Shown here: piece by piece, positions 10,903 to 40,435 of the stretch | Layout of the letters: every line of letters starts with the position of its first letter | How positions within the stretch are numbered: position 1 is the stretch's first letter | Notes under the pieces: model-generated | Told to the model about the DNA's origin: nothing | What the model saw: only the letters and a program-made list of their open reading frames with translations | Databases searched by the model: none | Source of the DNA: Guillardia theta CCMP2712 | Taxonomy: Eukaryota > Protista > Cryptophyta | Direction of reading: 5' to 3' | DNA: 64,000 nt | Assembly: GCF_000315625.1 (NCBI RefSeq) | Contig: NW_005434601.1 | Location: forward strand, 265,833 to 329,832 | Position numbers and translations under genes: made by a program

Positions 10903-19816
<8,914 letters not shown>

Positions 19817-20184
19817 GGGTTAGTTAGACTAGCGCATGTTTGACCAGCTTTCAAATGTGCCTCTGTCAAGACGGGTACTTTTCTCAGTACTTGACAAGTG
19901 GTGGGGTGGTAGTGTATGTGGATGTGAAAAACTCTCACGATTGAAAGTTTTGACAATGCCAAACAAACATCGTTAGATTCAGAGATAGAGTGAAAGTTGT
20001 CATTCACTACACTTGTTCTCTTCGTTCAGGATTTCACTCTTGTCATTTTGTCCTCTCAGCAAGGCAGGATGACAGTCCTGCCTCCAAACCAAGATGCCTC
20101 GCACTCCTCGCCCACAACGACGGTTGCCTGACAGGCCTCTTGCTGCCCATCTCCACGACAGGGCTGCTCAGCCTTGCTTTATTC

Positions 20185-20997
20185 CTAGTCCCTCAGACAC
20201 TCCTCCCACTTGCCCTGACCCTCCCTCGACTGCCCGCCCTCCTCCTCCCATGCAAACCAAGGCTCGCCCTGCGCCGGCCTCTCCCAGGCCTCCTCCGCCG
20301 TGCTCGGGCCGTGGCCTAGGGGGACTGCGTCTTGCGCTTCTTCCTCGCCCCAGGCGCCCTCCGTCAGGTACATCTCCCACGTGCTGTCTGGGCTGACGAG
20401 CTCGTCGCCCGACCCCAGGAAGCCCTCCGAGCCCTCCTCCCACCAGGTGCAGCAGCTCTGAGCCTCTGCTGCCTCCTCCTCCGTCCTCGCCCCGCTCTGC
20501 CGCCTCCGCCTCCATCCGTCCAGGCACGCCTGGCCTGACCTGACGCATCGCCCGCAAGGCCTCTCGGGGTCGCACTTGAGCCGCGACCTCCTGCAGCGCT
20601 CGCACGCTTGGGTCACCTGCTCTCGCCTCCGCTGGTACCCCTGCAAGTCCACTCCCAGCGGAAGCCCCCCTTCCTCGTAGCACACGGACCCTGTCCGGAA
20701 GCAGCGCGCGCAGGGCCGCGCTTCCCCGCAGCGCACTTTCTTGAGCTGGCAGCCCAGGCAGGCCTTGCTCGACCTGCGGCGAAGTCCGCGCGTTGCCGTG
20801 GGGGTCCCGAGCGCGGCATCACCAGCCTCTGGTCGAGAGCAGTCGTCCCCGCGTCCGGCCCGGAGGCAGCGGGAGCAAGGGAACTGCTCGTCACAGCGAG
20901 TCTTGCGGCGACGGCACTGGGCGCAAGCAGCGAAGGGGCGAGGAGGAACAGCAAGCGGCATCATGGAGGGGCGAGGAGGAACAGCAAGCGGCATCAT
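20185..20997 (-). CDS. Triple Zn(II)2Cys6 transcription factor, copy 1 (270 aa from first ATG)
   Basis: CAQCRRRKTRCDEQFPCSRCLRAGRGDDC, CLGCQLKKVRCGEARPCARCFRTGSVC and CERCRRSRLKCDPERPCGRCVRSGQAC each fit CX2CX6CX5CX2CX6-8C. Acidic Trp-rich tail; no introns. Confidence 0.9.
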   Translation of the reverse strand: MMPLAVPPRPSMMPLAVPPRPFAACAQCRRRKTRCDEQFPCSRCLRAGRGDDCSRPEAGDAALGTPTATRGLRRRSSKACLGCQLKKVRCGEARPCARCFRTGSVCYEEGGLPLGVDLQGYQRRREQVTQACERCRRSRLKCDPERPCGRCVRSGQACLDGWRRRRQSGARTEEEAAEAQSCCTWWEEGSEGFLGSGDELVSPDSTWEMYLTEGAWGEEEAQDAVPLGHGPSTAEEAWERPAQGEPWFAWEEEGGQSREGQGKWEECLRD

Positions 20998-22575
20998 GTT
21001 GGCTGGAGGGGAAGGAGAGCCCCCAAGAGAGATGATTTCGCATCTCACGGAAACTGAAGATCTCCGTGTAGTAAAATACTTCTTTCTTTTTATGGCACGG
21101 TCCTCTCGTCTGCCTGTCAATTCGTCTTACGCTTTGAGAGGTGCTCTGCATGCTCCTTCGCCAGCGTATCGCTCTGTAGACGGTCTTCATACAAGGATAG
21201 TCTATCGGCCTAGCTGCTCTCCTATGATACATCTCTCTATGAAGATCAAGCCAAAGTCAGTGAGCTTTGGAGATCCTGATGGTAAGGAACCCACGGGAGT
21301 CTGCTTGTACTACAGTTACTACCCGGATGCGCCGCGGCTACTATCATTGACTTGAGCTGCAGTTTGCCTCCTTGGCCTTCTCTTGCTCGCTCTTCTTGCT
21401 CTTTATCTCTCTTGATGACGGCGATCAGGTTGCAATGTCCTTGTACAGGTTAGGGCCTTCGCGTGGAAGGACGAGGATGAGGACTTCGCCGTTTGCTTAG
21501 AAGCATGAGTGTAGGGAACGGACTCGCACACATACAGCTGTGTTTACCTGCAACGCTCTTCCTGCTCCCTGTGCATCATACAGCAGGGATCTGTTGCACG
21601 AGTACGCTGCTTCGCTATGCTATGTCAGGCTGCTCGCAAGTCGCTGTGGAGTGACCTGCAATCACAATCTGTATAGTGCTAGGAACAACTGCTCAGGTGG
21701 TCTGTCCTTTCCCTTGCTGTATGTGCCACGAACCGATAGTGCGTTTATGTTATCTAATAAACTTCATGTCTCTACTCATCAGCTTTTTGTGATCTAGCGG
21801 AGGTGCTTTGAGAATTCGCTGTAGACGTCTGCAACCCATAAAGCTTCACAGGGGTGTGACACGATTTGGTAGCTTTAAGTGTTGGTGTCGTGAGTTGTAA
21901 AGCCTTTTGTTTCCCTCTCCTATCTTTTTGCTTTTTGCGTCTGGATTACTGTATGTCGTACAATACTCGACTGGCTTCTTGCTTCCAAGCAGATCTCTGA
22001 GCATCACCTTTCAGATAATGATTGGCAATCTGTGGGGGACGCTGATGATTTGGGACAAGACCGCGTCGTCACGAAGACGGTGGGGGTGCAATCAACAAGA
22101 CCGCGTCGTCACAATCATTGGAAGACCTGGCTGAGCAGGTTGCGTCGCTCCAGGCGCAACTGCATGCAGCTCTACATATGAGCCAGACCGTGGAGTCCAG
22201 ACCGCCGACCGGGATGATGGCATGTCACATTCTCCAGGTACCGCGGTCACCATGGAAGGGGATGCGAGGAACCTCTTCACACGCTTACCGCTGATCGACG
22301 GCACGGCCGTCGGCATCGACGCCTCTCGCCGTCGATACTCGTGCCCAACACTCGGCAAAAATCAAGAGCTTGCCTAAGTTGGATACCGCTGGGCAGACCC
22401 TGAAGACGAATGTGTTGACGTAGGTCAGAGCAGAACGGTATGCTCTCAAATAAACTACATGTCTCTACACTGCACCTTCTTGTGATCTAGCGCACTCCTC
22501 GCCCACAACGACGGTTGCCTGACAGGCCTCTTGCTGCCCATCTCCACGACAGGGCTGCTCAGCCTTGCTTTATTC

Positions 22576-23421
22576 CTAGTCCCTCAGACACTCCTCCCAC
22601 TTGCCCTGACCCTCCCTCGACTGCCCGCCCTCCTCCTCCCATGCAAACCAAGGCTCGCCCTGCGCCGGCCTCTCCCAGGCCTCCTCCGCCGTGCTCGGGC
22701 CGTGGCCTAGGGGGACTGCGGCTTGCGCTTCTTCCTCGCCCCAGGCGCCCTCCGTCAGGTACATCTCCCACGTGCTGTCTGGGCTGACGAGCTCGTCGCC
22801 CGACCCCAGGAAGCCCTCCGAGCCCTCCTCCCACCAGGTGCAGCAGCTCTGAGCCTCTGCTGCCTCCTCCTCCGTCCTCGCCCCGCTCTGCCGCCTCCGC
22901 CTCCATCCGTCCAGGCACGCCTGGCCTGACCTGACGCATCGCCCGCAAGGCCTCTCGGGGTCGCACTTGAGCCGCGACCTCCTGCAGCGCTCGCACGCTT
23001 GGGTCACCTGCTCTCGCCTCCGCTGGTACCCCTGCAAGTCCACTCCCAGCGGAAGCCCCCCTTCCTCGTAGCACACGGACCCTGTCCGGAAGCAGCGCGC
23101 GCAGGGCCGCGCTTCCCCGCAGCGCACTTTCTTGAGCTGGCAGCCCAGGCAGGCCTTGCTCGACCTGCGGCGAAGTCCGCGCGTTGCCGTGGGGGTCCCG
23201 AGCGCGGCATCACCAGCCTCTGGTCGAGAGCAGTCGTCCCCGCGTCCGGCCCGGAGGCAGCGGGAGCAAGGGAACTGCTCGTCACAGCGAGTCTTGCGGC
23301 GACGGCACTGGGCGCAAGCAGCGAAGGGGCGAGGAGGAACAGCAAGCGGCATCATGGAGGGGCGAGGAGGAACAGCAAGCGGCATCATGGAGGGGCGAGG
23401 AGGAACAGCAAGCGGCATCAT
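22576..23421 (-). CDS. Triple Zn(II)2Cys6 transcription factor, copy 2 (281 aa)
   Basis: As copy 1, with three MMPLAVPPRP repeats. Confidence 0.9.
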   Translation of the reverse strand: MMPLAVPPRPSMMPLAVPPRPSMMPLAVPPRPFAACAQCRRRKTRCDEQFPCSRCLRAGRGDDCSRPEAGDAALGTPTATRGLRRRSSKACLGCQLKKVRCGEARPCARCFRTGSVCYEEGGLPLGVDLQGYQRRREQVTQACERCRRSRLKCDPERPCGRCVRSGQACLDGWRRRRQSGARTEEEAAEAQSCCTWWEEGSEGFLGSGDELVSPDSTWEMYLTEGAWGEEEAQAAVPLGHGPSTAEEAWERPAQGEPWFAWEEEGGQSREGQGKWEECLRD

Positions 23422-24999
23422 GTTGGCTGGAGGGGAAGGAGAGCCCCCAAGAGAGATGATTTCGCATCTCACGGAAACTGAAGATCTCCGTGTAGTAAAA
23501 TACTTCTTTCTTTTTATGGCACGGTCCTCTCGTCTGCCTGTCAATTCGTCTTACGCTTTGAGAGGTGCTCTGCATGCTCCTTCGCCAGCGTATCGCTCTG
23601 TAGACGGTCTTCATACAAGGATAGTCTATCGGCCTAGCTGCTCTCCTATGATACATCTCTCTATGAAGATCAAGCCAAAGTCAGTGAGCTTTGGAGATCC
23701 TGATGGTAAGGAACCCACGGGAGTCTGCTTGTACTACAGTTACTACCCGGATGCGCCGCGGCTACTATCATTGACTTGAGCTGCAGTTTGCCTCCTTGGC
23801 CTTCTCTTGCTCGCTCTTCTTGCTCTTTATCTCTCTTGATGACGGCGATCAGGTTGCAATGTCCTTGTACAGGTTAGGGCCTTCGCGTGGAAGGACGAGG
23901 ATGAGGACTTCGCCGTTTGCTTAGAAGCATGAGTGTAGGGATCGGACTCGCACACATACAGCTGTGTTTACCTGCAACGCTCTTCCTGCTCCCTGTGCAT
24001 CATACAGCAGGGATCTGTTGCACGAGTACGCTGCTTCGCTATGCTATGTCAGGCTGCTCGCAAGTCGCTGTGGAGTGACCTGCAATCACAATCTGTATAG
24101 TGCTTGGAACAACTGCTCAGGTGGTCTGTCCTTTCCCTTGCTGTATGTGCCACGAACCGATAGTGCGTTTATGTTATCTAATAAACTTCATGTCTCTACT
24201 CATCAGCTTTTTGTGATCCAGCGGAGGTGCTTTGAGAATTCGCTGTAGACGTCTGCAACCCATAAAGCTTCACAGGGGTGTGACACGATTTGGTAGCTTT
24301 AAGTGTTGGTGTCGTGAGTTGTAAAGTCTTTTGTTTCCCTCTCCTATCTTTTTGCTTTTTGCGTCTGGATTACTGTATGTCGTACAATACTCGACTGGCT
24401 TCTTGCTTCCAAGCAGATCTCTGAACATCACCTTTCTGATAATGATTGGCAATCTGTGGGGGACGCTGATGATTTGGGACAAGACCGTGTCTTCACGAAG
24501 ACGGTGGGGGTGCAATCAACAAGACCACGTCGTCACAATCATTGGAAGACCTGGCTGAGCAGGTTGCGTCGCTCCAGGCGCAACTGCATGCAGCTCTACA
24601 TATGAGCCAGACCGTGGAGTCCAGACCGCCGACCGGGATGATGGCATGTCACATTCTCCAGGTACCGCGGTCACCATGGAAGGGGATGCGAGGAACCTCT
24701 TCACACGCTTACCGCTGATCGACGGCTCGGCCGTCGGCATCGACGCCTCTCGCTGTCGATACTCGTGCCCAACACTCGGCAAAAATCAAGAGCTTGCCTA
24801 AGTTGGATACCGCTGGGCAGACCCTGAAGACGAATGTGTTGACGTAGGTCAGAGCAGAACGGTATGCTCTCAAATAAACTACATGTCTCTACACTGCACC
24901 TTCTTGTGATCTAGCGCACTCCTCGCCCACAACGACGGTTGCCTGACAGGCCTCTTGCTGCCCATCTCCACGACAGGGCTGCTCAGCCTTGCTTTATTC

Positions 25000-25878
25000 C
25001 TAGTCCCTCAGACACTCCTCCCACTTGCCCTGACCCTCCCTCGACTGCCCGCCCTCCTCCTCCCATGCAAACCAAGGCTCGCCCTGCGCCGGCCTCTCCC
25101 AGGCCTCCTCCGCCGTGCTCGGGCCGTGGCCTAGGGGGACTACGGCTTGCGCTTCTTCCTCGCCCCAGGCGCCCTCCGTCAGGTACATCTCCCACGTGCT
25201 GTCTGGGCTGACGAGCTCGTCGCCCGACCCCAGGAAGCCCTCCGAGCCCTCCTCCCACCAGGTGCAGCAGCTCTGAGCCTCTGCTGCCTCCTCCTCCGTC
25301 CTCGCCCCGCTCTGCCGCCTCCGCCTCCATCCGTCCAGGCACGCCTGGCCTGACCTGACGCATCGCCCGCAAGGCCTCTCGGGGTCGCACTTGAGCCGCG
25401 ACCTCCTGCAGCGCTCGCACGCTTGGGTCACCTGCTCTCGCCTCCGCTGGTACCCCTGCAAGTCCACTCCCAGCGGAAGCCCCCCTTCCTCGTAGCACAC
25501 GGACCCTGTCCGGAAGCAGCGCGCGCAGGGCCGCGCTTCCCCGCAGCGCACTTTCTTGAGCTGGCAGCTCAGGCAGGCCTTGCTCGACCTGCGGCGAAGT
25601 CCGCGCGTTACCGTGGGGGTCCCGAGCGCGGCATCACCAGCCTCTGGTCGAGAGCAGTCGTCCCCGCGTCCGGCCCGGAGGCAGCGGGAGCAAGGGAACT
25701 GCTCGTCACAGCGAGTCTTGCGGCGACGGCACTGGGCGCAAGCAGCGAAGGGGCGAGGAGGAACAGCAAGCGGCATCATGGAGGGGCGAGGAGGAACAGC
25801 AAGCGGCATCATGGAGGGGCGAGGAGGAACAGCAAGCGGCATCATGGAGGGGCGAGGAGGAACAGCAAGCGGCATCAT
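25000..25878 (-). CDS. Triple Zn(II)2Cys6 transcription factor, copy 3 (292 aa)
   Basis: As copy 1, with four N-terminal repeats. Confidence 0.9.
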   Translation of the reverse strand: MMPLAVPPRPSMMPLAVPPRPSMMPLAVPPRPSMMPLAVPPRPFAACAQCRRRKTRCDEQFPCSRCLRAGRGDDCSRPEAGDAALGTPTVTRGLRRRSSKACLSCQLKKVRCGEARPCARCFRTGSVCYEEGGLPLGVDLQGYQRRREQVTQACERCRRSRLKCDPERPCGRCVRSGQACLDGWRRRRQSGARTEEEAAEAQSCCTWWEEGSEGFLGSGDELVSPDSTWEMYLTEGAWGEEEAQAVVPLGHGPSTAEEAWERPAQGEPWFAWEEEGGQSREGQGKWEECLRD

Positions 25879-27456
25879 GTTGGCTGGAGGGGAAGGAGAG
25901 CCCCCAAGAGAGATGATTTCGCATCTCACGGAAACTGAAGATCTCCGTGTAGTAAAATACTTCTTTCTTTTTATGGCACGGTCCTCTCGTCTGCCTGTCA
26001 ATTCGTCTTACGCTTTGAGAGGTGCTCTGCATGCTCCTTCGCCAGCGTATCGCTCTGTAGACGGTCTTCATACAAGGATAGTCTATCGGCCTAGCTGCTC
26101 TCCTATGATACATCTCTCTATGAAGATCAAGCCAAAGTCAGTGAGCTTTGGAGATCCTGATGGTAAGGAACCCACGGGAGTCTGCTTGTACTACAGTTAC
26201 TACCCGGATGCGCCGCGGCTACTATCATTGACTTGAGCTGCAGTTTGCCTCCTTGGCCTTCTCTTGCTCGCTCTTCTTGCTCTTTATCTCTCTTGATGAC
26301 GGCGATCAGGTTGCAATGTCCTTGTACAGGTTAGGGCCTTCGCGTGGAAGGACGAGGATGAGGACTTCGCCGTTTGCTTAGAAGCATGAGTGTAGGGAAC
26401 GGACTCGCACACATACAGCTGTGTTTACCTGCAACGCTCTTCCTGCTCCCTGTGCATCATACAGCAGGGATCTGTTGCACGAGTACGCTGCTTCGCTATG
26501 CTATGTCAGGCTGCTCGCAAGTCGCTGTGGAGTGACCTGCAATCACAATCTGTATAGTGCTTGGAACAACTGCTCAGGTGGTCTGTCCTTTCCCTTGCTG
26601 TATGTGCCACGAACCGATAGTGCGTTTATGTTATCTAATAAACTTCATGTCTCTACTCATCAGCTTTTTGTGATCCAGCGGAGGTGCTTTGAGAATTCGC
26701 TGTAGACGTCTGCAACCCATAAAGCTTCACAGGGGTGTGACACGATTTGGTAGCTTTAAGTGTTGGTGTCGTGAGTTGTAAAGTCTTTTGTTTCCCTCTC
26801 CTATCTTTTTGCTTTTTGCGTCTGGATTACTGTATGTCGTACAATACTCGACTGGCTTCTTGCTTCCAAGCAGATCTCTGAACATCACCTTTCTGATAAT
26901 GATTGGCAATCTGTGGGGGACGCTGATGATTTGGGACAAGACCGTGTCTTCACGAAGACGGTGGGGGTGCAATCAACAAGACCACGTCGTCACAATCATT
27001 GGAAGACCTGGCTGAGCAGGTTGCGTCGCTCCAGGCGCAACTGCATGCAGCTCTACATATGAGCCAGACCGTGGAGTCCAGACCGCCGACCGGGATGATG
27101 GCATGTCACATTCTCCAGGTACCGCGGTCACCATGGAAGGGGATGCGAGGAACCTCTTCACACGCTTACCGCTGATCGACGGCTCGGCCGTCGGCATCGA
27201 CGCCTCTCGCTGTCGATACTCGTGCCCAACACTCGGCAAAAATCAAGAGCTTGCCTAAGTTGGATACCGCTGGGCAGACCCTGAAGACGAATGTGTTGAC
27301 GTAGGTCAGAGCAGAACGGTATGCTCTCAAATAAACTACATGTCTCTACACTGCACCTTCTTGTGATCTAGCGCACTCCTCGCCCACAACGACGGTTGCC
27401 TGACAGGCCTCTTGCTGCCCATCTCCACGACAGGGCTGCTCAGCCTTGCTTTATTC

Positions 27457-28269
27457 CTAGTCCCTCAGACACTCCTCCCACTTGCCCTGACCCTCCCTCG
27501 ACTGCCCGCCCTCCTCCTCCCATGCAAACCAAGGCTCGCCCTGCGCCGGCCTCTCCCAGGCCTCCTCCGCCGTGCTCGGGCCGTGGCCTAGGGGGACTAC
27601 GGCTTGCGCTTCTTCCTCGCCCCAGGCGCCCTCCGTCAGGTACATCTCCCACGTGCTGTCTGGGCTGACGAGCTCGTCGCCCGACCCCAGGAAGCCCTCC
27701 GAGCCCTCCTCCCACCAGGTGCAGCAGCTCTGAGCCTCTGCTGCCTCCTCCTCCGTCCTCGCCCCGCTCTGCCGCCTCCGCCTCCATCCGTCCAGGCACG
27801 CCTGGCCTGACCTGACGCATCGCCCGCAAGGCCTCTCGGGGTCGCACTTGAGCCGCGACCTCCTGCAGCGCTCGCACGCTTGGGTCACCTGCTCTCGCCT
27901 CCGCTGGTACCCCTGCAAGTCCACTCCCAGCGGAAGCCCCCCTTCCTCGTAGCACACGGACCCTGTCCGGAAGCAGCGCGCGCAGGGCCGCGCTTCCCCG
28001 CAGCGCACTTTCTTGAGCTGGCAGCTCAGGCAGGCCTTGCTCGACCTGCGGCGAAGCCCGCGCGTTACCGTGGGGGTCCCGAGCGCGGCATCACCAGCCT
28101 CTGGTCGAGAGCAGTCGTCCCCGCGTCCGGCCCGGAGGCAGCGGGAGCAAGGGAACTGCTCGTCACAGCGAGTCTTGCGGCGACGGCACTGGGCGCAAGC
28201 AGCGAAGGGGCGAGGAGGAACAGCAAGCGGCATCATGGAGGGGCGAGGAGGAACAGCAAGCGGCATCAT
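27457..28269 (-). CDS. Triple Zn(II)2Cys6 transcription factor, copy 4 (270 aa)
   Basis: As copy 1, with two N-terminal repeats. Confidence 0.9.
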   Translation of the reverse strand: MMPLAVPPRPSMMPLAVPPRPFAACAQCRRRKTRCDEQFPCSRCLRAGRGDDCSRPEAGDAALGTPTVTRGLRRRSSKACLSCQLKKVRCGEARPCARCFRTGSVCYEEGGLPLGVDLQGYQRRREQVTQACERCRRSRLKCDPERPCGRCVRSGQACLDGWRRRRQSGARTEEEAAEAQSCCTWWEEGSEGFLGSGDELVSPDSTWEMYLTEGAWGEEEAQAVVPLGHGPSTAEEAWERPAQGEPWFAWEEEGGQSREGQGKWEECLRD

Positions 28270-29847
28270 GTTGGCTGGAGGGGAAGGAGAGCCCCCAAGA
28301 GAGATGATTTCGCATCTCACGGAAACTGAAGATCTCCGTGTAGTAAAATACTTCTTTCTTTTTATGGCACGGTCCTCTCGTCTGCCTGTCAATTCGTCTT
28401 ACGCTTTGAGAGGTGCTCTGCATGCTCCTTCGCCAGCGTATCGCTCTGTAGACGGTCTTCATACAAGGATAGTCTATCGGCCTAGCTGCTCTCCTATGAT
28501 ACATCTCTCTATGAAGATCAAGCCAAAGTCAGTGAGCTTTGGAGATCCTGATGGTAAGGAACCCACGGGAGTCTGCTTGTACTACAGTTACTACCCGGAT
28601 GCGCCGCGGCTACTATCATTGACTTGAGCTGCAGTTTGCCTCCTTGGCCTTCTCTTGCTCGCTCTTCTTGCTCTTTATCTCTCTTGATGACGGCGATCAG
28701 GTTGCAATGTCCTTGTACAGGTTAGGGCCTTCGCGTGGAAGGACGAGGATGAGGACTTCGCCGTTTGCTTAGAAGCATGAGTGTAGGGAACGGACTCGCA
28801 CACATACAGCTGTGTTTACCTGCAACGCTCTTCCTGCTCCCTGTGCATCATACAGCAGGGATCTGTTGCACGAGTACGCTGCTTCGCTATGCTATGTCAG
28901 GCTGCTCGCAAGTCGCTGTGGAGTGACATGCAATCACAATCTGTATAGTGCTAGGAACAACTGCTCAGGTGGTCTGTCCTTTCCCTTGCTGTATGTGCCA
29001 CGAACCGATAGTGCGTTTATGTTATCTAATAAACTTCATGTCTCTACTCATCAGCTTTTTGTGATCCAGCGGAGGTGCTTTGAGAATTCGCTGTAGACGT
29101 CTGCAACCCATAAAGCTTCACAGGGGTGTGACACGATTTGGTAGCTTTAAGTGTTGGTGTCGTGAGTTGTAAAGCCTTTTGTTTCCCTCTCCTATCTTTT
29201 TGCTTTTTGCGTCTGGATTACTGTATGTCGTACAATACTCGACTGGCTTCTTGCTTCCAAGCAGATCTCTGAGCATCACCTTTCAGATAATGATTGGCAA
29301 TCTGTGGGGGACGCTGATGATTTGGGACAAGACCGCGTCGTCACGAAGACGGTGGGGGTGCAATCAACAAGACCGCGTCGTCACAATCATTGGAAGACCT
29401 GGCTGAGCAGGTTGCGTCGCTCCAGGCGCAACTGCATGCAGCTCTACATATGAGCCAGACCGTGGAGTCCAGACCGCCGACCGGGATGATGGCATGTCAC
29501 ATTCTCCAGGTACCGCGGTCACCATGGAAGGGGATGCGAGGAACCTCTTCACACGCTTACCGCTGATCGACGGCTCGGCCGTCGGCATCGACGCCTCTCG
29601 CTGTCGATACTCGTGCCCAACACTCGGCAAAAATCAAGAGCTTGCCTAAGTTGGATACCGCTGGGCAGACCCTGAAGACGAATGTGTTGACGTAGGTCAG
29701 AGCAGAACGGTATGCTCTCAAATAAACTACATGTCTCTACACTGCACCTTCTTGTGATCTAGCGCACTCCTCGCCCACAACGACGGTTGCCTGACAGGCC
29801 TCTTGCTGCCCATCTCCACGACAGGGCTGCTCAGCCTTGCTTTATTC

Positions 29848-30660
29848 CTAGTCCCTCAGACACTCCTCCCACTTGCCCTGACCCTCCCTCGACTGCCCGC
29901 CCTCCTCCTCCCATGCAAACCAAGGCTCGCCCTGCGCCGGCCTCTCCCAGGCCTCCTCCGCTGTGCTCGGGCCGTGGCCTAGGGGGACTACGGCTTGCGC
30001 TTCTTCCTCGCCCCAGGCGCCCTCCGTCAGGTACATCTCCCACGTGCTGTCTGGGCTGACGAGCTCGTCGCCCGACCCCAGGAAGCCCTCCGAGCCCTCC
30101 TCCCACCAGGTGCAGCAGCTCTGAGCCTCTGCTGCCTCCTCCTCCGTCCTCGCCCCGCTCTGCCGCCTCCGCCTCCATCCGTCCAGGCACGCCTGGCCTG
30201 ACCTGACGCATCGCCCGCAAGGCCTCTCGGGGTCGCACTTGAGCCGCGACCTCCTGCAGCGCTCGCACGCTTGGGTCACCTGCTCTCGCCTCCGCTGGTA
30301 CCCCTGCAAGTCCACTCCCAGCGGAAGCCCCCCTTCCTCGTAGCACACGGACCCTGTCCGGAAGCAGCGCGCGCAGGGCCGCGCTTCCCCGCAGCGCACT
30401 TTCTTGAGCTGGCAGCCCAGGCAGGCCTTGCTCGACCTGCGGCGAAGTCCGCGCGTTGCCGTGGGGGTCCCGAGCGCGGCATCACCAGCCTCTGGTCGAG
30501 AGCAGTCGTCCCCGCGTCCGGCCCGGAGGCAGCGGGAGCAAGGGAACTGCTCGTCACAGCGAGTCTTGCGGCGACGGCACTGGGCGCAAGCAGCGAAGGG
30601 GCGAGGAGGAACAGCAAGCGGCATCATGGAGGGGCGAGGAGGAACAGCAAGCGGCATCAT
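29848..30660 (-). CDS. Triple Zn(II)2Cys6 transcription factor, copy 5 (270 aa)
   Basis: As copy 1, with two N-terminal repeats. Confidence 0.9.
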   Translation of the reverse strand: MMPLAVPPRPSMMPLAVPPRPFAACAQCRRRKTRCDEQFPCSRCLRAGRGDDCSRPEAGDAALGTPTATRGLRRRSSKACLGCQLKKVRCGEARPCARCFRTGSVCYEEGGLPLGVDLQGYQRRREQVTQACERCRRSRLKCDPERPCGRCVRSGQACLDGWRRRRQSGARTEEEAAEAQSCCTWWEEGSEGFLGSGDELVSPDSTWEMYLTEGAWGEEEAQAVVPLGHGPSTAEEAWERPAQGEPWFAWEEEGGQSREGQGKWEECLRD

Positions 30661-32238
30661 GTTGGCTGGAGGGGAAGGAGAGCCCCCAAGAGAGATGATT
30701 TCGCATCTCACGGAAACTGAAGATCTCCGTGTAGTAAAATACTTCTTTCTTTTTATGGCACGGTCCTCTCGTCTGCCTGTCAATTCGTCTTACGCTTTGA
30801 GAGGTGCTCTGCATGCTCCTTCGCCAGCGTATCGCTCTGTAGACGGTCTTCATACAAGGATAGTCTATCGGCCTAGCTGCTCTCCTATGATACATCTCTC
30901 TATGAAGATCAAGCCAAAGTCAGTGAGCTTTGGAGATCCTGATGGTAAGGAACCCACGGGAGTCTGCTTGTACTACAGTTACTACCCGGATGCGCCGCGG
31001 CTACTATCATTGACTTGAGCTGCAGTTTGCCTCCTTGGCCTTCTCTTGCTCGCTCTTCTTGCTCTTTATCTCTCTTGATGACGGCGATCAGGTTGCAATG
31101 TCCTTGTACAGGTTAGGGCCTTCGCGTGGAAGGACGAGGATGAGGACTTCGCCGTTTGCTTAGAAGCATGAGTGTAGGGATCGGACTCGCACACATACAG
31201 CTGTGTTTACCTGCAACGCTCTTCCTGCTCCCTGTGCATCATACAGCAGGGATCTGTTGCACGAGTACGCTGCTTCGCTATGCTATGTCAGGCTGCTCGC
31301 AAGTCGCTGTGGAGTGACATGCAATCACAATCTGTATAGTGCTAGGAACAACTGCTCAGGTGGTCTGTCCTTTCCCTTGCTGTATGTGCCACGAACCGAT
31401 AGTGCGTTTATGTTATCTAATAAACTTCATGTCTCTACTCATCAGCTTTTTGTGATCCAGCGGAGGTGCTTTGAGAATTCGCTGTAGACGTCTGCAACCC
31501 ATAAAGCTTCACAGGGGTGTGACACGATTTGGTAGCTTTAAGTGTTGGTGTCGTGAGTTGTAAAGCCTTTTGTTTCCCTCTCCTATCTTTTTGCTTTTTG
31601 CGTCTGGATTACTGTATGTCGTACAATACTCGACTGGCTTCTTGCTTCCAAGCAGATCTCTGAACATCACCTTTCTGATAATGATTGGCAATCTGTGGGG
31701 GACGCTGATGATTTGGGACAAGACCGTGTCTTCACGAAGACGGTGGGGGTGCAATCAACAAGACCACGTCGTCACAATCATTGGAAGACCTGGCTGAGCA
31801 GGTTGCGTCGCTCCAGGCGCAACTGCATGCAGCTCTACATATGAGCCAGACCGTGGAGTCCAGACCGCCGACCGGGATGATGGCATGTCACATTCTCCAG
31901 GTACCGCGGTCACCATGGAAGGGGATGCGAGGAACCTCTTCACACGCTTACCGCTGATCGACGGCTCGGCCGTCGGCATCGACGCCTCTCGCTGTCGATA
32001 CTCGTGCCCAACACTCGGCAAAAATCAAGAGCTTGCCTAAGTTGGATACCGCTGGGCAGACCCTGAAGACGAATGTGTTGACGTAGGTCAGAGCAGAACG
32101 GTATGCTCTCAAATAAACTACATGTCTCTACACTGCACCTTCTTGTGATCTAGCGCACTCCTCGCCCACAACGACGGTTGCCTGACAGGCCTCTTGCTGC
32201 CCATCTCCACGACAGGGCTGCTCAGCCTTGCTTTATTC

Positions 32239-33084
32239 CTAGTCCCTCAGACACTCCTCCCACTTGCCCTGACCCTCCCTCGACTGCCCGCCCTCCTCCT
32301 CCCATGCAAACCAAGGCTCGCCCTGCGCCGGCCTCTCCCAGGCCTCCTCCGCCGTGCTCGGGCCGTGGCCTAGGGGGACTACGGCTTGCGCTTCTTCCTC
32401 GCCCCAGGCGCCCTCCGTCAGGTACATCTCCCACGTGCTGTCTGGGCTGACGAGCTCGTCGCCCGACCCCAGGAAGCCCTCCGAGCCCTCCTCCCACCAG
32501 GTGCAGCAGCTCTGAGCCTCTGCTGCCTCCTCCTCCGTCCTCGCCCCGCTCTGCCGCCTCCGCCTCCATCCGTCCAGGCACGCCTGGCCTGACCTGACGC
32601 ATCGCCCGCAAGGCCTCTCGGGGTCGCACTTGAGCCGCGACCTCCTGCAGCGCTCGCACGCTTGGGTCACCTGCTCTCGCCTCCGCTGGTACCCCTGCAA
32701 GTCCACTCCCAGCGGAAGCCCCCCTTCCTCGTAGCACACGGACCCTGTCCGGAAGCAGCGCGCGCAGGGCCGCGCTTCCCCGCAGCGCACTTTCTTGAGC
32801 TGGCAGCTCAGGCAGGCCTTGCTCGACCTGCGGCGAAGCCCGCGCGTTACCGTGGGGGTCCCGAGCGCGGCATCACCAGCCTCTGGTCGAGAGCAGTCGT
32901 CCCCGCGTCCGGCCCGGAGGCAGCGGGAGCAAGGGAACTGCTCGTCACAGCGAGTCTTGCGGCGACGGCACTGGGCGCAAGCAGCGAAGGGGCGAGGAGG
33001 AACAGCAAGCGGCATCATGGAGGGGCGAGGAGGAACAGCAAGCGGCATCATGGAGGGGCGAGGAGGAACAGCAAGCGGCATCAT
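32239..33084 (-). CDS. Triple Zn(II)2Cys6 transcription factor, copy 6 (281 aa)
   Basis: As copy 1, with three N-terminal repeats. Confidence 0.9.
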   Translation of the reverse strand: MMPLAVPPRPSMMPLAVPPRPSMMPLAVPPRPFAACAQCRRRKTRCDEQFPCSRCLRAGRGDDCSRPEAGDAALGTPTVTRGLRRRSSKACLSCQLKKVRCGEARPCARCFRTGSVCYEEGGLPLGVDLQGYQRRREQVTQACERCRRSRLKCDPERPCGRCVRSGQACLDGWRRRRQSGARTEEEAAEAQSCCTWWEEGSEGFLGSGDELVSPDSTWEMYLTEGAWGEEEAQAVVPLGHGPSTAEEAWERPAQGEPWFAWEEEGGQSREGQGKWEECLRD

Positions 33085-34663
33085 GTTGGCTGGAGGGGAA
33101 GGAGAGCCCCCAAGAGAGATGATTTCGCATCTCACGGAAACTGAAGATCTCCGTGTAGTAAAATACTTCTTTCTTTTTATGGCACGGTCCTCTCGTCTGC
33201 CTGTCAATTCGTCTTACGCTTTGAGAGGTGCTCTGCATGCTCCTTCGCCAGCGTATCGCTCTGTAGACGGTCTTCATACAAGGATAGTCTATCGGCCTAG
33301 CTGCTCTCCTATGATACATCTCTCTATGAAGATCAAGCCAAAGTCAGTGAGCTTTGGAGATCCTGATGGTAAGGAACCCACGGGAGTCTGCTTGTACTAC
33401 AGTTACTACCCGGATGCGCCGCGGCTACTATCATTGACTTGAGCTGCAGTTTGCCTCCTTGGGCCTTCTCTTGCTCGCTCTTCTTGCTCTTTATCTCTCT
33501 TGATGACGGCGATCAGGTTGCAATGTCCTTGTACAGGTTAGGGCCTTCGCGTGGAAGGACGAGGATGAGGACTTCGCCGTTTGCTTAGAAGCATGAGTGT
33601 AGGTATCGGACTCGCACACATACAGCTGTCTTTACCTGCAACGCTCTTCCTGCTCCCTGTGCATCATACAGCAGGGATCTGTTGCACGAGTACGCTGCTT
33701 CGCTATGCTATGTCAGGCTGCTCGCAAGTCGCTGTGGAGTGACCTGCAATCACAATCTGTATAGTGCTAGGAACAACTGCTCAGGTGGTCTGTCCTTTCC
33801 CTTGCTGTATGTGCCACGAACCGATAGTGCGTTTATGTTATCTAATAAACTTCATGTCTCTACTCATCAGCTTTTTGTGATCCAGCGGAGGTGCTTTGAG
33901 AATTCGCTGTAGACGTCTGCAACCCATAAAGCTTCACAGGGGTGTGACACGATTTGGTAGCTTTAAGTGTTGGTGTCGTGAGTTGTAAAGTCTTTTGTTT
34001 CCCTCTCCTATCTTTTTGCTTTTTGCGTCTGGATTACTGTATGTCGTACAATACTCGACTGGCTTCTTGCTTCCAAGCAGATCTCTGAGCATCACCTTTC
34101 TGATAATGATTGGCAATCTGTGGGGGACGCTGATGATTTGGGACAAGACCGTGTCTTCACGAAGACGGTGGGGGTGCAATCAACAAGACCACGTCGTCAC
34201 AATCATTGGAAGACCTGGCTGAGCAGGTTGCGTCGCTCCAGGCGCAACTGCATGCAGCTCTACATATGCACCAGACCGTGGAGTCCAGACCGCCGACCGG
34301 GATGATGGCATGTCACATTCTCCAGGTACCGCGGTCACCATGGAAGGGGATGCGAGGAACCTCTTCACACGCTTACCGCTGATCGACGGCACGGCCGTCG
34401 GCATCGACGCCTCTCGCTGTCGATACTCGTGCCCAACACTCGGCAAAAATCAAGAGCTTGCCTAAGTTGGATACCGCTGGGCAGACCCTGAAGACGAATG
34501 TGTTGACGTAGGTCAGAGCAGAACGGTATGCTCTCAAATAAACTACATGTCTCTACACTGCACCTTCTTGTGATCTAGCGCACTCCTCGCCCACAACGAC
34601 GGTTGCCTGACAGGCCTCTTGCTGCCCATCTCCACGACAGGGCTGCTCAGCCTTGCTTTATTC

Positions 34664-35580
34664 CTAGTCCCTCAGACACTCCTCCCACTTGCCCTGACCC
34701 TCCCTCGACTGCCCGCCCTCCTCCTCCCATGCAAACCAAGGCTCGCCCTGCGCCGGCCTCTCCCAGGCCTCCTCCGCTGTGCTCGGGCCGTGGCCTAGGG
34801 GGACTGCGGCTTGCGCTTCTTCCTCGCCCCAGGCGCCCTCCGTCAGGTACATCTCCCACGTGCTGTCTGGGCTGACGAGCTCGTCGCCCGACCCCAGGAA
34901 GCCCTCCGAGCCCTCCTCCCACCAGGTGCAGCAGCTCTGAGCCTCTGCTGCCTCCTCCTCCGTCCTCGCCCCGCTCTGCCGCCTCCGCCTCCATCCGTCC
35001 AGGCACGCCTGGCCTGACCTGACGCATCGCCCGCAAGGCCTCTCGGGGTCGCACTTGAGCCGCGACCTCCTGCAGCGCTCGCACGCTTGGGTCACCTGCT
35101 CTCGCCTCCGCTGGTACCCCTGCAAGTCCACTCCCAGCGGAAGCCCCCCTTCCTCGTAGCACACGGACCCTGTCCGGAAGCAGCGCGCGCAGGGCCGCGC
35201 TTCCCCGCAGCGCGCTGGTACCCCTGCAAGTCCACTCCCAGCGGAAGCCCCCCTTCCTCGTAGCACACGGACCCTGTCCGGAAGCAGCGCGCGCAGGGCC
35301 GCGCTTCCCCGCAGCGCACTTTCTTGAGCTGGCAGCTCAGGCAGGCCTTGCTCGACCTGCGGCGAAGTCCGCGCGTTACCGTGGGGGTCCCGAGCGCGGC
35401 ATCACCAGCCTCTGGTCGAGAGCAGTCGTCCCCGCGTCCGGCCCGGAGGCAGCGGGAGCAAGGGAACTGCTCGTCACAGCGAGTCTTGCGGCGACGGCAC
35501 TGGGCGCAAGCAGCGAAGGGGCGAGGAGGAACAGCAAGCGGCATCATGGAGGGGCGAGGAGGAACAGCAAGCGGCATCAT
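34664..35580 (-). pseudogene. Zn(II)2Cys6 transcription factor copy 7, frameshifted by a 104-bp internal tandem duplication
   Basis: 35109-35212 is repeated from 35213. The frame shifts after the second cluster and stops at 35092. Confidence 0.88.
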
Positions 35581-37158
35581 GTTGGCTGGAGGGGAAGGAG
35601 AGCCCCCAAGAGAGATGATTTCGCATCTCACGGAAACTGAAGATCTCCGTGTAGTAAAATACTTCTTTCTTTTTATGGCACGGTCCTCTCGTCTGCCTGT
35701 CAATTCGTCTTACGCTTTGAGAGGTGCTCTGCATGCTCCTTCGCCAGCGTATCGCTCTGTAGACGGTCTTCATACAAGGATAGTCTATCGGCCTAGCTGC
35801 TCTCCTATGATACATCTCTCTATGAAGATCAAGCCAAAGTCAGTGAGCTTTGGAGATCCTGATGGTAAGGAACCCACGGGAGTCTGCTTGTACTACAGTT
35901 ACTACCCGGATGCGCCGCGGCTACTATCATTGACTTGAGCTGCAGTTTGCCTCCTTGGCCTTCTCTTGCTCGCTCTTCTTGCTCTTTATCTCTCTTGATG
36001 ACGGCGATCAGGTTGCAATGTCCTTGTACAGGTTAGGGCCTTCGCGTGGAAGGACGAGGATGAGGACTTCGCCGTTTGCTTAGAAGCATGAGTGTAGGTA
36101 TCGGACTCGCACACATACAGCTGTGTTTACCTGCAACGCTCTTCCTGCTCCCTGTGCATCATACAGCAGGGATCTGTTGCACGAGTACGCTGCTTCGCTA
36201 TGCTATGTCAGGCTGCTCGCAAGTCGCTGTGGAGTGACATGCAATCACAATCTGTATAGTGCTAGGAACAACTGCTCAGGTGGTCTGTCCTTTCCCTTGC
36301 TGTATGTGCCACGAACCGATAGTGCGTTTATGTTATCTAATAAACTTCATGTCTCTACTCATCAGCTTTTTGTGATCTAGCGGAGGTGCTTCGAGAGTTC
36401 GCTGTAGACGTCTGCAACCCATAAAGCTTCACAGGGGTGTGACACGATTTGGTAGCTTTAAGTGTTGGTGTCGTGAGTTGTAAAGTCTTTTGTTTCCCTC
36501 TCCTATCTTTTTGCTTTTTGCGTCTGGATTACTGTATGTCGTACAATACTCGACTGGCTTCTTGCTTCCAAGCAGATCTCTGAACATCACCTTTCTGATA
36601 ATGATTGGCAATCTGTGGGGGACGCTGATGATTTGGGACAAGACCGTGTCTTCACGAAGACGGTGGGGGTGCAATCAACAAGACCACGTCGTCACAATCA
36701 TTGGAAGACCTGGCTGAGCAGGTTGCGTCGCTCCAGGCGCAACTGCATGCAGCTCTACATATGAGCCAGACCGTGGAGTCCAGACCGCCGACCGGGATGA
36801 TGGCATGTCACATTCTCCAGGTACCGCGGTCACCATGGAAGGGGATGCGAGGAACCTCTTCACACGCTTACCGCTGATCGACGGCTCGGCCGTCGGCATC
36901 GACGCCTCTCGCTGTCGATACTCGTGCCCAACACTCGGCAAAAATCAAGAGCTTGCCTAAGTTGGATACCGCTGGGCAGACCCTGAAGACGAATGTGTTG
37001 ACGTAGGTCAGAGCAGAACGGTATGCTCTCAAATAAACTACATGTCTCTACACTGCACCTTCTTGTGATCTAGCGCACTCCTCGCCCACAACGACGGTTG
37101 CCTGACAGGCCTCTTGCTGCCCATCTCCACGACAGGGCTGCTCAGCCTTGCTTTATTC

Positions 37159-37971
37159 CTAGTCCCTCAGACACTCCTCCCACTTGCCCTGACCCTCCCT
37201 CGACTGCCCGCCCTCCTCCTCCCATGCAAACCAAGGCTCGCCCTGCGCCGGCCTCTCCCAGGCCTCCTCCGCCGTGCTCGGGCCGTGGCCTAGGGGGACT
37301 GCGGCTTGCGCTTCTTCCTCGCCCCAGGCGCCCTCCGTCAGGTACATCTCCCACGTGCTGTCTGGGCTGACGAGCTCGTCGCCCGACCCCAGGAAGCCCT
37401 CCGAGCCCTCCTCCCACCAGGTGCAGCAGCTCTGAGCCTCTGCTGCCTCCTCCTCCGTCCTCGCCCCGCTCTGCCGCCTCCGCCTCCATCCGTCCAGGCA
37501 CGCCTGGCCTGACCTGACGCATCGCCCGCAAGGCCTCTCGGGGTCGCACTTGAGCCGCGACCTCCTGCAGCGCTCGCACGCTTGGGTCACCTGCTCTCGC
37601 CTCCGCTGGTACCCCTGCAAGTCCACTCCCAGCGGAAGCCCCCCTTCCTCGTAGCACACGGACCCTGTCCGGAAGCAGCGCGCGCAGGGCCGCGCTTCCC
37701 CGCAGCGCACTTTCTTGAGCTGGCAGCTCAGGCAGGCCTTGCTCGACCTGCGGCGAAGCCCGCGCGTTGCCGTGGGGGTCCCAAGCGCGGCATCACCAGC
37801 CTCTGGTCGAGAGCAGTCGTCCCCGCGTCCGGCCCGGAGGCAGCGGGAGCAAGGGAACTGCTCGTCACAGCGAGTCTTGCGGCGACGGCACTGGGCGCAA
37901 GCAGCGAAGGGGCGAGGAGGAACAGCAAGCGGCATCATGGAGGGGCGAGGAGGAACAGCAAGCGGCATCAT
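37159..37971 (-). CDS. Triple Zn(II)2Cys6 transcription factor, copy 8 (270 aa), with a different upstream region
   Basis: Coding sequence intact; sequence beyond about 38013 departs from the array unit. Confidence 0.88.
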   Translation of the reverse strand: MMPLAVPPRPSMMPLAVPPRPFAACAQCRRRKTRCDEQFPCSRCLRAGRGDDCSRPEAGDAALGTPTATRGLRRRSSKACLSCQLKKVRCGEARPCARCFRTGSVCYEEGGLPLGVDLQGYQRRREQVTQACERCRRSRLKCDPERPCGRCVRSGQACLDGWRRRRQSGARTEEEAAEAQSCCTWWEEGSEGFLGSGDELVSPDSTWEMYLTEGAWGEEEAQAAVPLGHGPSTAEEAWERPAQGEPWFAWEEEGGQSREGQGKWEECLRD

Positions 37972-38434
37972 GGAGGGGCGAGGAGGAACAGCAAGCAGGA
38001 GGAACAGCAAGCGGAGTCTCGGGGTTGCCGTGTGGTAAATTTGTGTTCCTTTCTGCCTGTCAACTCAACACGAGCGTCTACTCGTGTAGTCCAATCATTC
38101 GTAATGAGCCTCCCCGGGCCCCCTCCTCCCCCTACGCTTGTTTTCCTGTGGTCGCGATCTAGGGCATGAGCCCTCCTCCTCTCAGAGTCTGCTGGGCCCG
38201 GGGAGCATGAAAGGGTCAACCGTGAACGGGGGAGTAGTCTCTGTTCTGCCTTTAAGCGTTTCAATAAACTTGGGCCTCTCTATCTCTGGGCTCGGTAGCA
38301 GGCCGTCACCTCAGACTGTCGTGTACCGTAGTACGGTATCCGATGATAGTATGGCCCGGCTCTGCATGCCGATGATCATCGGTTGCTCCTTCGCTACTTC
38401 AGTACAGTGGCAACCTGGATGCACGGCTTTCAAG

Positions 38435-38712
38435 TTTCTAGCACACTGGCCATCTAGGACAATTCTAGCACACATCTAGGATAGTAGGACATTTCTAGCA
38501 CACATCTAGGACATGTCTAGCACACATCTAGGACATTTCCAGCGCACATCTAGGCTAGTAGGACATTTCTAGCACACATCTAGGACATTTCTAGCACACA
38601 TCTAGCATAGGACATTTCTAGCGCATATCTAGGACATTTCTAGCACACATCTAGGACATTTCTAGCACACATCTAGGACAAGTTTCGGAAGTTCTAGCAC
38701 ACATCTAGGACA
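38435..38712. repeat. 22-bp tandem repeat (about 11 copies) made of two 11-bp TCTAG-containing halves
   Basis: Consensus ATTTCTAGCAC-ACATCTAGGAC with occasional short inserts. Confidence 0.95.
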
Positions 38713-38946
38713 GACATTACGATACGGGTGCGCCTCAGGGTTCATTCATTCTGATCCGGAAGGGTCAGGGCATCCCTGTGGGTAGGGGTAGTCATGTGTG
38801 TGGACAATGGTAGGGTACTTTTCGTTTCAATTGAAGGTAGGGGTACATTGGGGGTGGGGTTGTACGCCGTTGGGTCGAGGGGTCGCCATGTCGATGGAGG
38901 GGATCAATGCTGTGATGAGGAAGGCTACTATGGCGACGGCGACGGC

Positions 38947-38997
<51 letters not shown>
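38947..38997. repeat. (GAT)n microsatellite
   Basis: Directly visible. Confidence 0.95.
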
Positions 38998-38999
<2 letters not shown>

Positions 39000-39010
39000 G
39001 GAAGTCAGAC

Positions 39011-40435
39011 ATGCCTTCACTGACTTCACTGCTCTCTCGAAACTCTGCCTCCTCGTCCTACATGTCATTCTCAACCTCGTCACCGTCCTTTGTGTCTCGT
39101 CGGTTAAACAACAGACGACTTCGGCTTCCATCTCTTCAGGAGAGCTCCTCCTCCTCCATCGATGCAGACACTGCACCTCATCGCCAGGATCATGCAGGAG
39201 TGAGTGCTGCGGCTGTTCAACTCCGGGCATGCGTGTCTGAAGGTATACTTTCGGCGTGATGGCGAACTATCGCTGACATTGCCTGTAGCACGGGATGTCA
39301 AGGATGGGATCTGGTGCCTCTCTCGCCTCCTCTCTCGCCTGCCCCCCGCTCTCGAGCACAGAGCTCTTGCTGTAGCCCAGGAGGTTGCTCCGACGGTGGA
39401 CAAGAGGACGCCTCCGCAGGGCCTGACAATCAATCTTGAGACTTGCCTGGGACAAGCTCGTAGTCCTGATGCTCGCACTTTCTGTCTTGCTGATCTTCTC
39501 GCTCGCATCCCTCCCAAGGCTCTCGCGCTGGCTGCCCGTCAGGCTGAGGAGACTCCCGTCGTCGACTGGAACGGAACTAGCGCCGATGCCACACAGGACG
39601 CCGAGAGCTTCCTGTCCTGCGTGCAGAGCTCGGAGGTTGCCACAGTCTTCCCGGCCCTTATCCTCTTCCCTTCTTGTTCCTTCTCTTTGCTTCCCTCCCA
39701 CCTCTTCCCTTCTTGGTCCTTCTCTTTGCTTCCCTCCCACCTCCTCCCTTCTTGTTTCTCCCTCCTTCTCTTCCTTGCCCTTCTCCAGCCTCCCTGCTGA
39801 CTGGGAGCCTGCAGACTGTGGACGAAGGGATCGTGTGTCTGGGTACCCTCCTCTCCGACCTCCCGCAGGCGCTTGTAGAACGCAGCACGCGTCTCCTTAC
39901 CTCTCTGCCTCCTCGCACCGTCAACACGGACCCTTCCGAGATGCAGACCCCAAACTTCGTCAAGTGCCTGAAGCTTGCGAGCAGCGGCGACTCCGCCATC
40001 TACTGCCTATCAAACTACCTTATCCACCTCCCTCAGGACCAGGTGCTCCCCTCCTCCCCTCTGGCTCGTAATGGCTGAGCCGAGCTGCAGGTCGAACGGG
40101 CGTACATCTTCTACAAGACCCAGCGGCTTCATCCCACGCTCGAGGACGTTGACCGGGTGAGGGAGGGAGGACGAGAAGGAGAGGAGAGAGGGAGTGACAG
40201 GGGAGCAGGAGGGCGTGTTCAAGAGCACCGCCAAGACGGCACTTAACGACGTTGGCCTCGGCTAGAGCCTCGGGGGAGCGTCAAGTAGATTTACATCATG
40301 GAAACTAGAAGGACAGCAAACGACTACCATCATGTTGACAGGCTGCTGTCCTCGCTCGCCGTCGCCAGGGGCTACAAGAGCCCTCGGGCTTGCAAGTCCT
40401 CCTTGCACCTCGGCGACTCCACGTACCTGAAGTGA
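39011..40435 (+). CDS. Hypothetical multi-exon protein; 5' end uncertain
   Basis: Splice-compatible exons RDVKDGIWCLSRLLSRLPP...VQSSE / TVDEGIVCLGTLLSDLP...LIHLPQDQ / VERAYIFYKTQRLHPTLEDVDR / ...LLSSLAVARGYKSPRACKSSLHLGDSTYLK*. No recognised domain. Confidence 0.55.

Follow-up and report, generated by a model that had tools for sequence, protein, structure and literature searches.

A homogenised tandem array of intronless genes for predicted three-cluster Zn2Cys6 proteins in the cryptophyte Guillardia theta

The array and its units

We investigated a tandem gene array in the cryptophyte Guillardia theta CCMP2712 (genome of 87.1 Mb in 669 contigs), which lies within a 64-kb stretch of contig C73 (positions 265833-329832, hereafter the window, whose coordinates are used unless another contig is named). 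The array was delimited by an anchored search and by BLAST of one unit against the window, spans 17.9 kb (286-304 kb of the 440-kb contig) and consists of head-to-tail copies of a unit whose gene encodes, where intact, a short protein with three Gal4-type Zn2Cys6 clusters. There are ~7.4 units altogether, the leftmost 85 bp (20100-20184) being a unit tail and the rightmost 838 bp a partial unit. The first-pass annotation had described eight tandem, near-identical units of ~2.4 kb; the tandem order and the near-identity (99.29-99.83% between pairs of units) hold, with the qualification that the eighth copy is partial. The array and its genes, with lengths in amino acids (aa), are as follows:

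20100-37996, genes on the minus strand: whole tandem array (85-bp unit tail, seven full units and one 838-bp partial unit)
20185-20997, minus strand: unit 1 coding sequence (CDS), 270 aa, the 3'-most gene
20839-20925, 20680-20760 and 20524-20604, minus strand: clusters 1, 2 and 3 of unit 1, respectively
22576-23421, minus strand: unit 2 CDS, 281 aa, with three copies of a 33-bp repeat
25000-25878, minus strand: unit 3 CDS, 292 aa, with four copies of the 33-bp repeat
27457-28269, minus strand: unit 4 CDS, 270 aa
29848-30660, minus strand: unit 5 CDS, 270 aa
32239-33084, minus strand: unit 6 CDS, 281 aa
34664-35580, minus strand: unit 7 CDS, broken by a frameshift past cluster 2, with a stop after 163 aa
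35109-35317: 104-bp segment in two tandem copies, the lesion that breaks the unit 7 reading frame
37159-37971, minus strand: unit 8 CDS, 270 aa, the 5'-most gene
23325-23422, minus strand: 33-bp coding minisatellite (unit 2 example), 2-4 copies per unit

Units begin, on the plus strand and thus at the stop-codon side of each open reading frame (ORF), at 20185, 22576, 25000, 27457, 29848, 32239, 34664 and 37159, and the full units measure, in order, 2391, 2424, 2457, 2391, 2391, 2425 and 2495 bp. This length variation arises from the 33-bp coding repeat, present in two to four copies, and from the 104-bp duplication of unit 7. The 33-bp repeat is perfect, encodes SMMPLAVPPRP and contains ATGATG in every copy, so that the start codon is itself repeated. 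At the right end, the homology of unit 8 to the other units stops at 37996, within the 33-bp repeat, indicating that this gene has a different upstream region.

Seven of the eight ORFs are intact, unit 7 alone being frameshifted, and each intact ORF is a single exon on the minus strand, with a product of 270, 281 or 292 aa counted from the first ATG. A deposited protein model matches the 270-aa ORF exactly; the gene is therefore annotated as single-exon, and no intron is needed. Thus, the product sizes (270-292 aa), the seven intact ORFs and the absence of introns stand as first described. In the databases, the proteins are named hypothetical proteins (NCBI) and Zn(2)-C6 fungal-type domain-containing proteins (UniProt).

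Each unit comprises the intronless gene of 0.8-0.9 kb, an upstream region, and a spacer that holds fragments of a dispersed repeat, as exemplified by unit 2:

23423-24100, minus strand: gene upstream region
24108-24285: core of a short dispersed repeat in the spacer, which other contigs also carry
~24863-24916: second, 54-bp fragment of the dispersed repeat

The dispersed repeat corresponds to unit positions ~1533-1710, reaching 2118 in two loci, and matches of 76-95% identity to it were found on at least 30 other contigs. A 54-bp fragment of this repeat terminates at position 20100, where the array starts on the left. In a genome search with one unit, the CDS matched paralogues only, and elsewhere in the unit only positions ~1533-2118 matched other contigs; patches of the upstream region, 460-770 bp from the ATG, recur upstream of a paralogue on contig C7 (C7b). 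We found no transposase, reverse-transcriptase or integrase domain in the unit, nor beside the repeat copies on contigs C118 and C21. Because the CDS matches only paralogues and no transposition enzyme was found, the unit is a gene segment joined to a repeat-derived segment rather than a transposon, and the possibility, raised with the first-pass annotation, that it belongs to a dispersed transposon family is not borne out.

Several other candidates were considered and set aside. The spacer repeat itself, having no transposition enzyme, was not accepted as a transposon and stays unclassified. A viral origin was rejected, as no relative was found in IMG/VR, and no environmental relatives were found in the JGI metagenomes. 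A hidden RNA gene was ruled out, since the unit gave no Rfam match at E values up to 1 and no tRNA. Finally, an autoregulatory CGG-N6-CCG site occurs once per unit, but within the CDS, and the window total of 18 such sites compares with 17.4 expected by chance.

We assessed the assembly by placing reads and contigs on positions 17700-22575, that is, the left flank plus one unit. In DNA run X1, unitigs of the unit had depths of 266-484 against 56 for the flank unitig, and in DNA run X2 depths of 19.6-27.5 against 5.4-6.7; unitig depth is not copy number, and these ratios (3-9x) are too rough for comparison between runs. The excess is confined to the unit, which excludes a misassembly of one or two copies, the outcome that read depth had been expected to discriminate. 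At the dispersed repeat of the spacer, the depth in X1 rises further, to a peak of 1299. A loose contig end at 20991 in X1 runs into the sequence found from 38015 onward, which is the right flank, confirming the right array junction.

Further support came from a metagenome contig in ENA (L026, PRJEB17505) of 2551 bp, whose terminal overlap of 127 bp at an assembly k of 127 resolves into a circle of 2424 bp, exactly as long as a unit in which the 33-bp repeat occurs three times. The circle matches unit 2 at 99.88% identity, and each base at which it departs from one unit of the window is seen in another, so that no difference is private to it. Since an assembler yields a circularised unit from a tandem array, L026 fits the tandem arrangement. 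All DNA data examined carry the same variants as CCMP2712, and no N run of the window falls inside the array. The array is genuine and multi-copy, and is not a misassembly.

As a side observation, PRJEB17505 (L026-L029; ERZ930064, ERZ930071) also yielded contigs for family loci on contigs C25 and C16 that are 90.5-97% identical to CCMP2712, indicating that this metagenome also includes a close G. theta relative. The simplest reading would be that a CCMP2712-like strain occurs there at low coverage, with only its eight-copy unit assembled, beside a commoner relative.

The encoded proteins and their family

Zn2Cys6 factors are regarded as essentially fungal, with one cluster per protein, and as binding DNA as dimers. 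Each array protein contained three matches to PF00172 (Zn_clus; E 1e-20, 73.5 bits against a gathering threshold of 21), and the six-cysteine motif CX2CX6CX5-12CX2CX6-8C was found three times per ORF. The C-terminal 104 aa are 25% aspartate plus glutamate and 11% aromatic, with eight tryptophans. The three Gal4-type clusters and the acidic, tryptophan-rich tail noted at first pass were thus recovered in the Pfam scan and in the tail composition. Pfam gave nothing except PF00172 at E values up to 1, and hence no Fungal_trans middle homology region was detected.

We examined the conservation of these features in a 15-member family alignment. Seventeen of the 18 cluster cysteines are invariant and the remaining one is nearly so. 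At the position of Gal4 Lys18, which is the sole side-chain contact of Gal4 to a base (PMC6265462), all members have lysine in clusters 1 (K32) and 2 (K87), and arginine or lysine in cluster 3. Family-specific signatures were identified in cluster 2 and in the RR(K/E)QV lead-in to cluster 3. The conservation seen in this alignment indicates that the triple layout arose before the family diversified.

Among solved structures, the closest relative is the DNA-binding domain of Pho7 (6e33/6o19, E 6e-7), which matches cluster 3 plus its basic extension, followed by the DNA-binding domains of Gal4, Put3 and Cep3. Both Pho7 and AlcR do without the Gal4 coiled coil and contact DNA as monomers (PMC6265462), and monomeric DNA binding, as first proposed for the array protein, is plausible by homology to this nearest solved relative. 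AlphaFold, run with the family alignment, gave a model of low overall confidence (mean predicted local distance difference test score, pLDDT, of 57), with three small two-helix modules (pLDDT 72-78), linkers of ~25 disordered residues and a disordered tail. This low-confidence model contained no long helix and no confident coiled coil; two 8-residue helices (pLDDT ~50) follow cluster 3, and none follow clusters 1 and 2. The earlier remark that neither a dimerisation coiled coil nor a regulatory middle region is evident agrees with both the model and the Pfam scan. Protein Atlas returned generic Zn_clus clusters only, scoring below the reliable level.

Acidic, aromatic tails are generally known as transcription activation domains. 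The array protein may accordingly be pictured as a sequence-specific transcription activator, in which the disordered acidic tail would serve as the activation domain and the clusters would form a beads-on-a-string monomer, reading up to three CGG-like triplets, one per cluster. No dimerisation would be needed, because one chain supplies all three clusters.

We identified a large family of related genes in the same genome, with at least 143 Zn_clus matches overall and 96 matches to the array protein. Paralogues with the same layout were read individually on contigs C7, C134, C25, C16, C103 and C189, and most of the fetched loci consist of a single open frame with three clusters in the same order, followed by an acidic, tryptophan-rich tail. 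Many other contigs carry intronless frames with two to four clusters, and the named paralogue matches include GUITHDRAFT_106565 and GUITHDRAFT_106548. The C73 proteins are 45-56% identical to those of the C134 and C25 genes, and 28-34% identical to those of the C16, C103 and C189 genes. The array gene is therefore a member of a large cryptophyte family, characterised by three Zn2Cys6 clusters, flexible linkers and a disordered, acidic, aromatic tail.

Similar proteins were also found outside G. theta, in an exhaustive, profile-free search that gave 396 hits. Hanusia phi transcripts from the Marine Microbial Eukaryote Transcriptome Sequencing Project (MMETSP) include three-cluster members with acidic tails, and indicate that the family is transcribed in this sister genus. 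Agaricomycetes and one species of Mucoromycota additionally have uncharacterised proteins with three to six clusters. Thus, one cluster per protein stands as the general rule, but the multi-cluster architecture is not unique to this array, and the three-cluster design, which had been treated as special to it, is common to a large G. theta family and also occurs in Hanusia phi, Agaricomycetes and Mucoromycota.

Family copies often form near-identical pairs, inverted on C16 and C7, and tandem on C134, C25 and C103. The nearest paralogues of the array genes form a head-to-head inverted pair on C7 (C7:899900-901850; L011:3901-5851), 99.4% identical over 647 bp. A second near-identical array, of a different triple-Zn2Cys6 subfamily, occupies C189:2574-14129, with a period of ~2.85 kb and 99.7% identity, and in it full genes alternate with truncated ones. 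None of these loci reaches the copy number or the structural regularity of the C73 array. In this genome, the formation of inverted pairs and local arrays is a recurrent trait of the family.

We also noted a minisatellite of ~45 bp in ~25 copies directly upstream of a triple-cluster gene on C25 (C25:190061-191238; L015:4062-5239), and the ENA contig of the relative starts in the same repeat.

Homogenisation, expression and alternative explanations

Among the seven full units, 24 ungapped columns are variable, of which six lie in the CDS, none in the 580 upstream columns, and 18 in the spacer. A T at 20330 is specific to unit 1, and positions 20754 and 20795 distinguish haplotypes. The four-gamete test was failed by 80 of 136 informative site pairs, and neighbouring units are not more alike than distant ones, indicating that the units exchange sequence rather than simply ageing in place. 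Exchange by unequal crossing-over or gene conversion keeps the units 99.3-99.8% alike. The absence of variants in the ~580 ungapped columns upstream of the ATG, where 5.8 were expected (P ~0.003), could reflect either a conversion hotspot or a constrained promoter. A gene segment bounds the array on both sides, and its layout would fit an expansion via unequal exchange between two initial gene copies.

Synonymous divergence is ~0.28-0.38 to the nearest paralogues, on C7, against ~0.01 within the array, so that the present homogeneity of the array is ~30 times younger than the split from C7. The ratio of non-synonymous to synonymous substitution rates (dN/dS) is 0.4-0.55 against the paralogues and 0.53-0.70 against the C7 pair. 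The values against the paralogues point to constraint, as does the much stronger conservation of the clusters compared with the tails.

We consider the locus to be a young tandem gene array, homogenised by conversion and encoding a probable monomeric activator, and place the probability of this reading at roughly 0.6. Copy number would mainly reflect the tendency of the family towards local amplification, and gene dosage would be raised only if the genes were induced.

Several observations weigh against this reading. One copy is already broken, the unit 7 product retaining clusters 1 and 2 only, and both C7 paralogues are damaged, one by a frameshift after cluster 3 and the other by a TAG in the tail. 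The CDS differences within the array (four non-synonymous and three synonymous) are too few for constraint within the array to be demonstrable. DNA binding, the monomeric state and activation are all read from sequence, and the structural model, as noted, is of low overall confidence. In RNA run X11 (~19.8 million reads), one read fell on the 4.9 kb of flank plus unit, with no expressed control gene included; run X12 likewise gave no reads there; none of the sampled words of the stretch turned up in 13 presumed RNA assemblies of the species; and no RNA run is among the datasets listed as containing the stretch. The single-copy flank is equally empty, and the RNA run is therefore one without a positive control, in which there is no sign of transcription, as distinct from silence. 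The array may be transcriptionally quiet under ordinary culture conditions. The RNA results would fit silencing and an inert, decaying amplification equally well.

These points would be accommodated by an inert recent amplification, in which unequal exchange was so recent that most ORFs are open by default, and the copies are silent, decaying and functionless. The lack of RNA signal, the frameshift of unit 7, the damage to the nearest paralogues and their dN/dS of 0.53-0.70 are each compatible with decay, and a within-array divergence of 0.2-0.7% leaves too little time for decay to become visible. However, only one of the eight ORFs is broken, no variant occurs in the 580 bp ahead of the ATG while the spacer varies, and the architecture is retained at 30-50% identity over many paralogues and in Hanusia transcripts. 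The RNA evidence also comes from a test that had no positive control. We accordingly regard an inert array as unlikely, although it retains some weight.

By analogy with the mammalian D4Z4/DUX4 repeat, the array might instead be a protist coding macrosatellite, held in repeat-induced silent chromatin whose threshold is set by copy number, from which a burst of triple-cluster monomeric activator, produced by one or a few units or by many templates at once, would drive a life-cycle or stress programme, with the other arrays and palindromes of the family acting as parallel switches. The kilobase-sized units, intronless ORF, several DNA-binding domains and activator-like tail recall that system, as do the apparent silence of the array in RNA data and the flanks of both end units, which differ from those of the internal units. 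Nonetheless, we found no mutational signature of repeat-induced point mutation (RIP) type or of methylation, either among the unit substitutions (14 transitions and 10 transversions) or in the CpG observed/expected ratio (0.81, with no depletion compared with the remainder of the window). There are only ~8 copies, and no telomere-type repeats occur in the 64-kb window, nor in C189:1-20000. The whole family is intronless, and missing introns are hence no retrogene mark of this locus, while the recurrence of similar arrays and pairs points to a general habit of amplification rather than to a dedicated switch. Such a switch therefore appears quite improbable.

Finally, an assembly artefact that inflated the copy number, or a transposon carrying the ORF as cargo, is highly improbable, for although the spacer holds a repeat found on at least 30 contigs, and contig breaks within the unit coincide with variant and repeat positions in each of the two DNA runs, the depth is 3-9x that of the flank in two runs, the circularised contig fits a tandem arrangement, the units differ by ordered variants and repeat lengths, only ~180-600 bp of the spacer is dispersed while the ORF matches paralogues alone, and neither transposase or reverse-transcriptase domains (in the unit or beside other repeat copies) nor IMG/VR relatives were found. 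A young, conversion-homogenised gene array with a probable activator product remains the preferred explanation.

We additionally noted features in the remainder of the window. Directly left of the array, an open frame on the minus strand (19280-19816) has a sub-threshold cNMP_binding match (E 0.002) and is probably one exon of a neighbouring gene. Just right of the array, positions 38451-38712 hold a 22/74-bp minisatellite on the motif CTAGCACACATCTAGGACATTT, and a (GAT)17 run at 38947-38997 corresponds to 17 methionine codons in a plus-strand ORF (38798-39259). Pfam gave no match on the right flank, which shares only short collinear words with the unit upstream region, none of them significant by BLAST. 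A low-GC block (0.32-0.41, against ~0.57 elsewhere) occupies 12001-16000 and is interrupted by N runs at 11655-12324 and 13899-14876.

Significance and comparison with known systems

A cryptophyte has expanded Zn2Cys6 to well over 100 domains, many of them carried, two to four at a time, by short proteins from intronless genes. If three linked clusters do read an extended, asymmetric site as a monomer, this would constitute a new use of the Zn2Cys6 fold. The conversion-homogenised arrays and inverted pairs of the family offer a clean setting, in a secondary-plastid alga, for work on concerted evolution and gene amplification. A copy-number switch would matter most if true, but is speculative.

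Fungal-type Zn-clus factors ("Fungal TRF") have been reported in haptophytes and stramenopiles (PMC4827209), and are, like the array proteins, fungal-type Zn2Cys6 proteins of algae with secondary plastids. That survey reported no Zn-clus factors for Guillardia and made no mention of multi-cluster proteins or arrays, and in the literature that we searched we found no paper on this multi-cluster design or on any Zn2Cys6 factor in Guillardia.

Classical regulators of the Gal4/Ppr1/Put3 type have a middle homology region (Fungal_trans), which was not detected in the array protein. Closer parallels are Pho7 of Schizosaccharomyces pombe and AlcR of Aspergillus, which share with it a canonical six-cysteine cluster and a conserved basic residue at the DNA-contact position. 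Pho7 and AlcR have no coiled-coil dimerisation element, and none was confidently predicted in the array protein. In contrast to these proteins, which have one cluster, the array protein has three per chain, is very short (270-292 aa), has no middle homology region, and is encoded in a tandem array in a cryptophyte. The multi-cluster proteins of Agaricomycetes and Mucoromycota (for example Ramaria, Neolentinus, Russula, Agrocybe and Dichotomocladium) resemble it in having three to six clusters, short length and no middle homology region, but differ in the spacing and number of clusters; most are without a strongly acidic tail, and no array context is known for them.

For the array as a whole, the nearest counterpart is D4Z4/DUX4, which likewise has head-to-tail units on the kilobase scale, each with a complete intronless ORF that encodes two or more DNA-binding domains and an activating region at the C-terminus (predicted in our case). 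The array is likewise apparently silent in routine samples, as judged here from RNA data with no positive control. D4Z4 is subject to epigenetic repression, is transcribed from a distal unit whose product is stabilised by a flanking poly(A) signal, is subtelomeric, and originated as a retrogene (PMC8350899, PMC12376486). Neither these features nor copy-number polymorphism is evident for the G. theta array. The G. theta array differs in having Zn2Cys6 clusters where DUX4 has homeodomains, in its number of units (~8), and in its lack of introns, which is a family-wide trait and not the mark of a retrogene. Thus, the resemblance to D4Z4/DUX4 is architectural.

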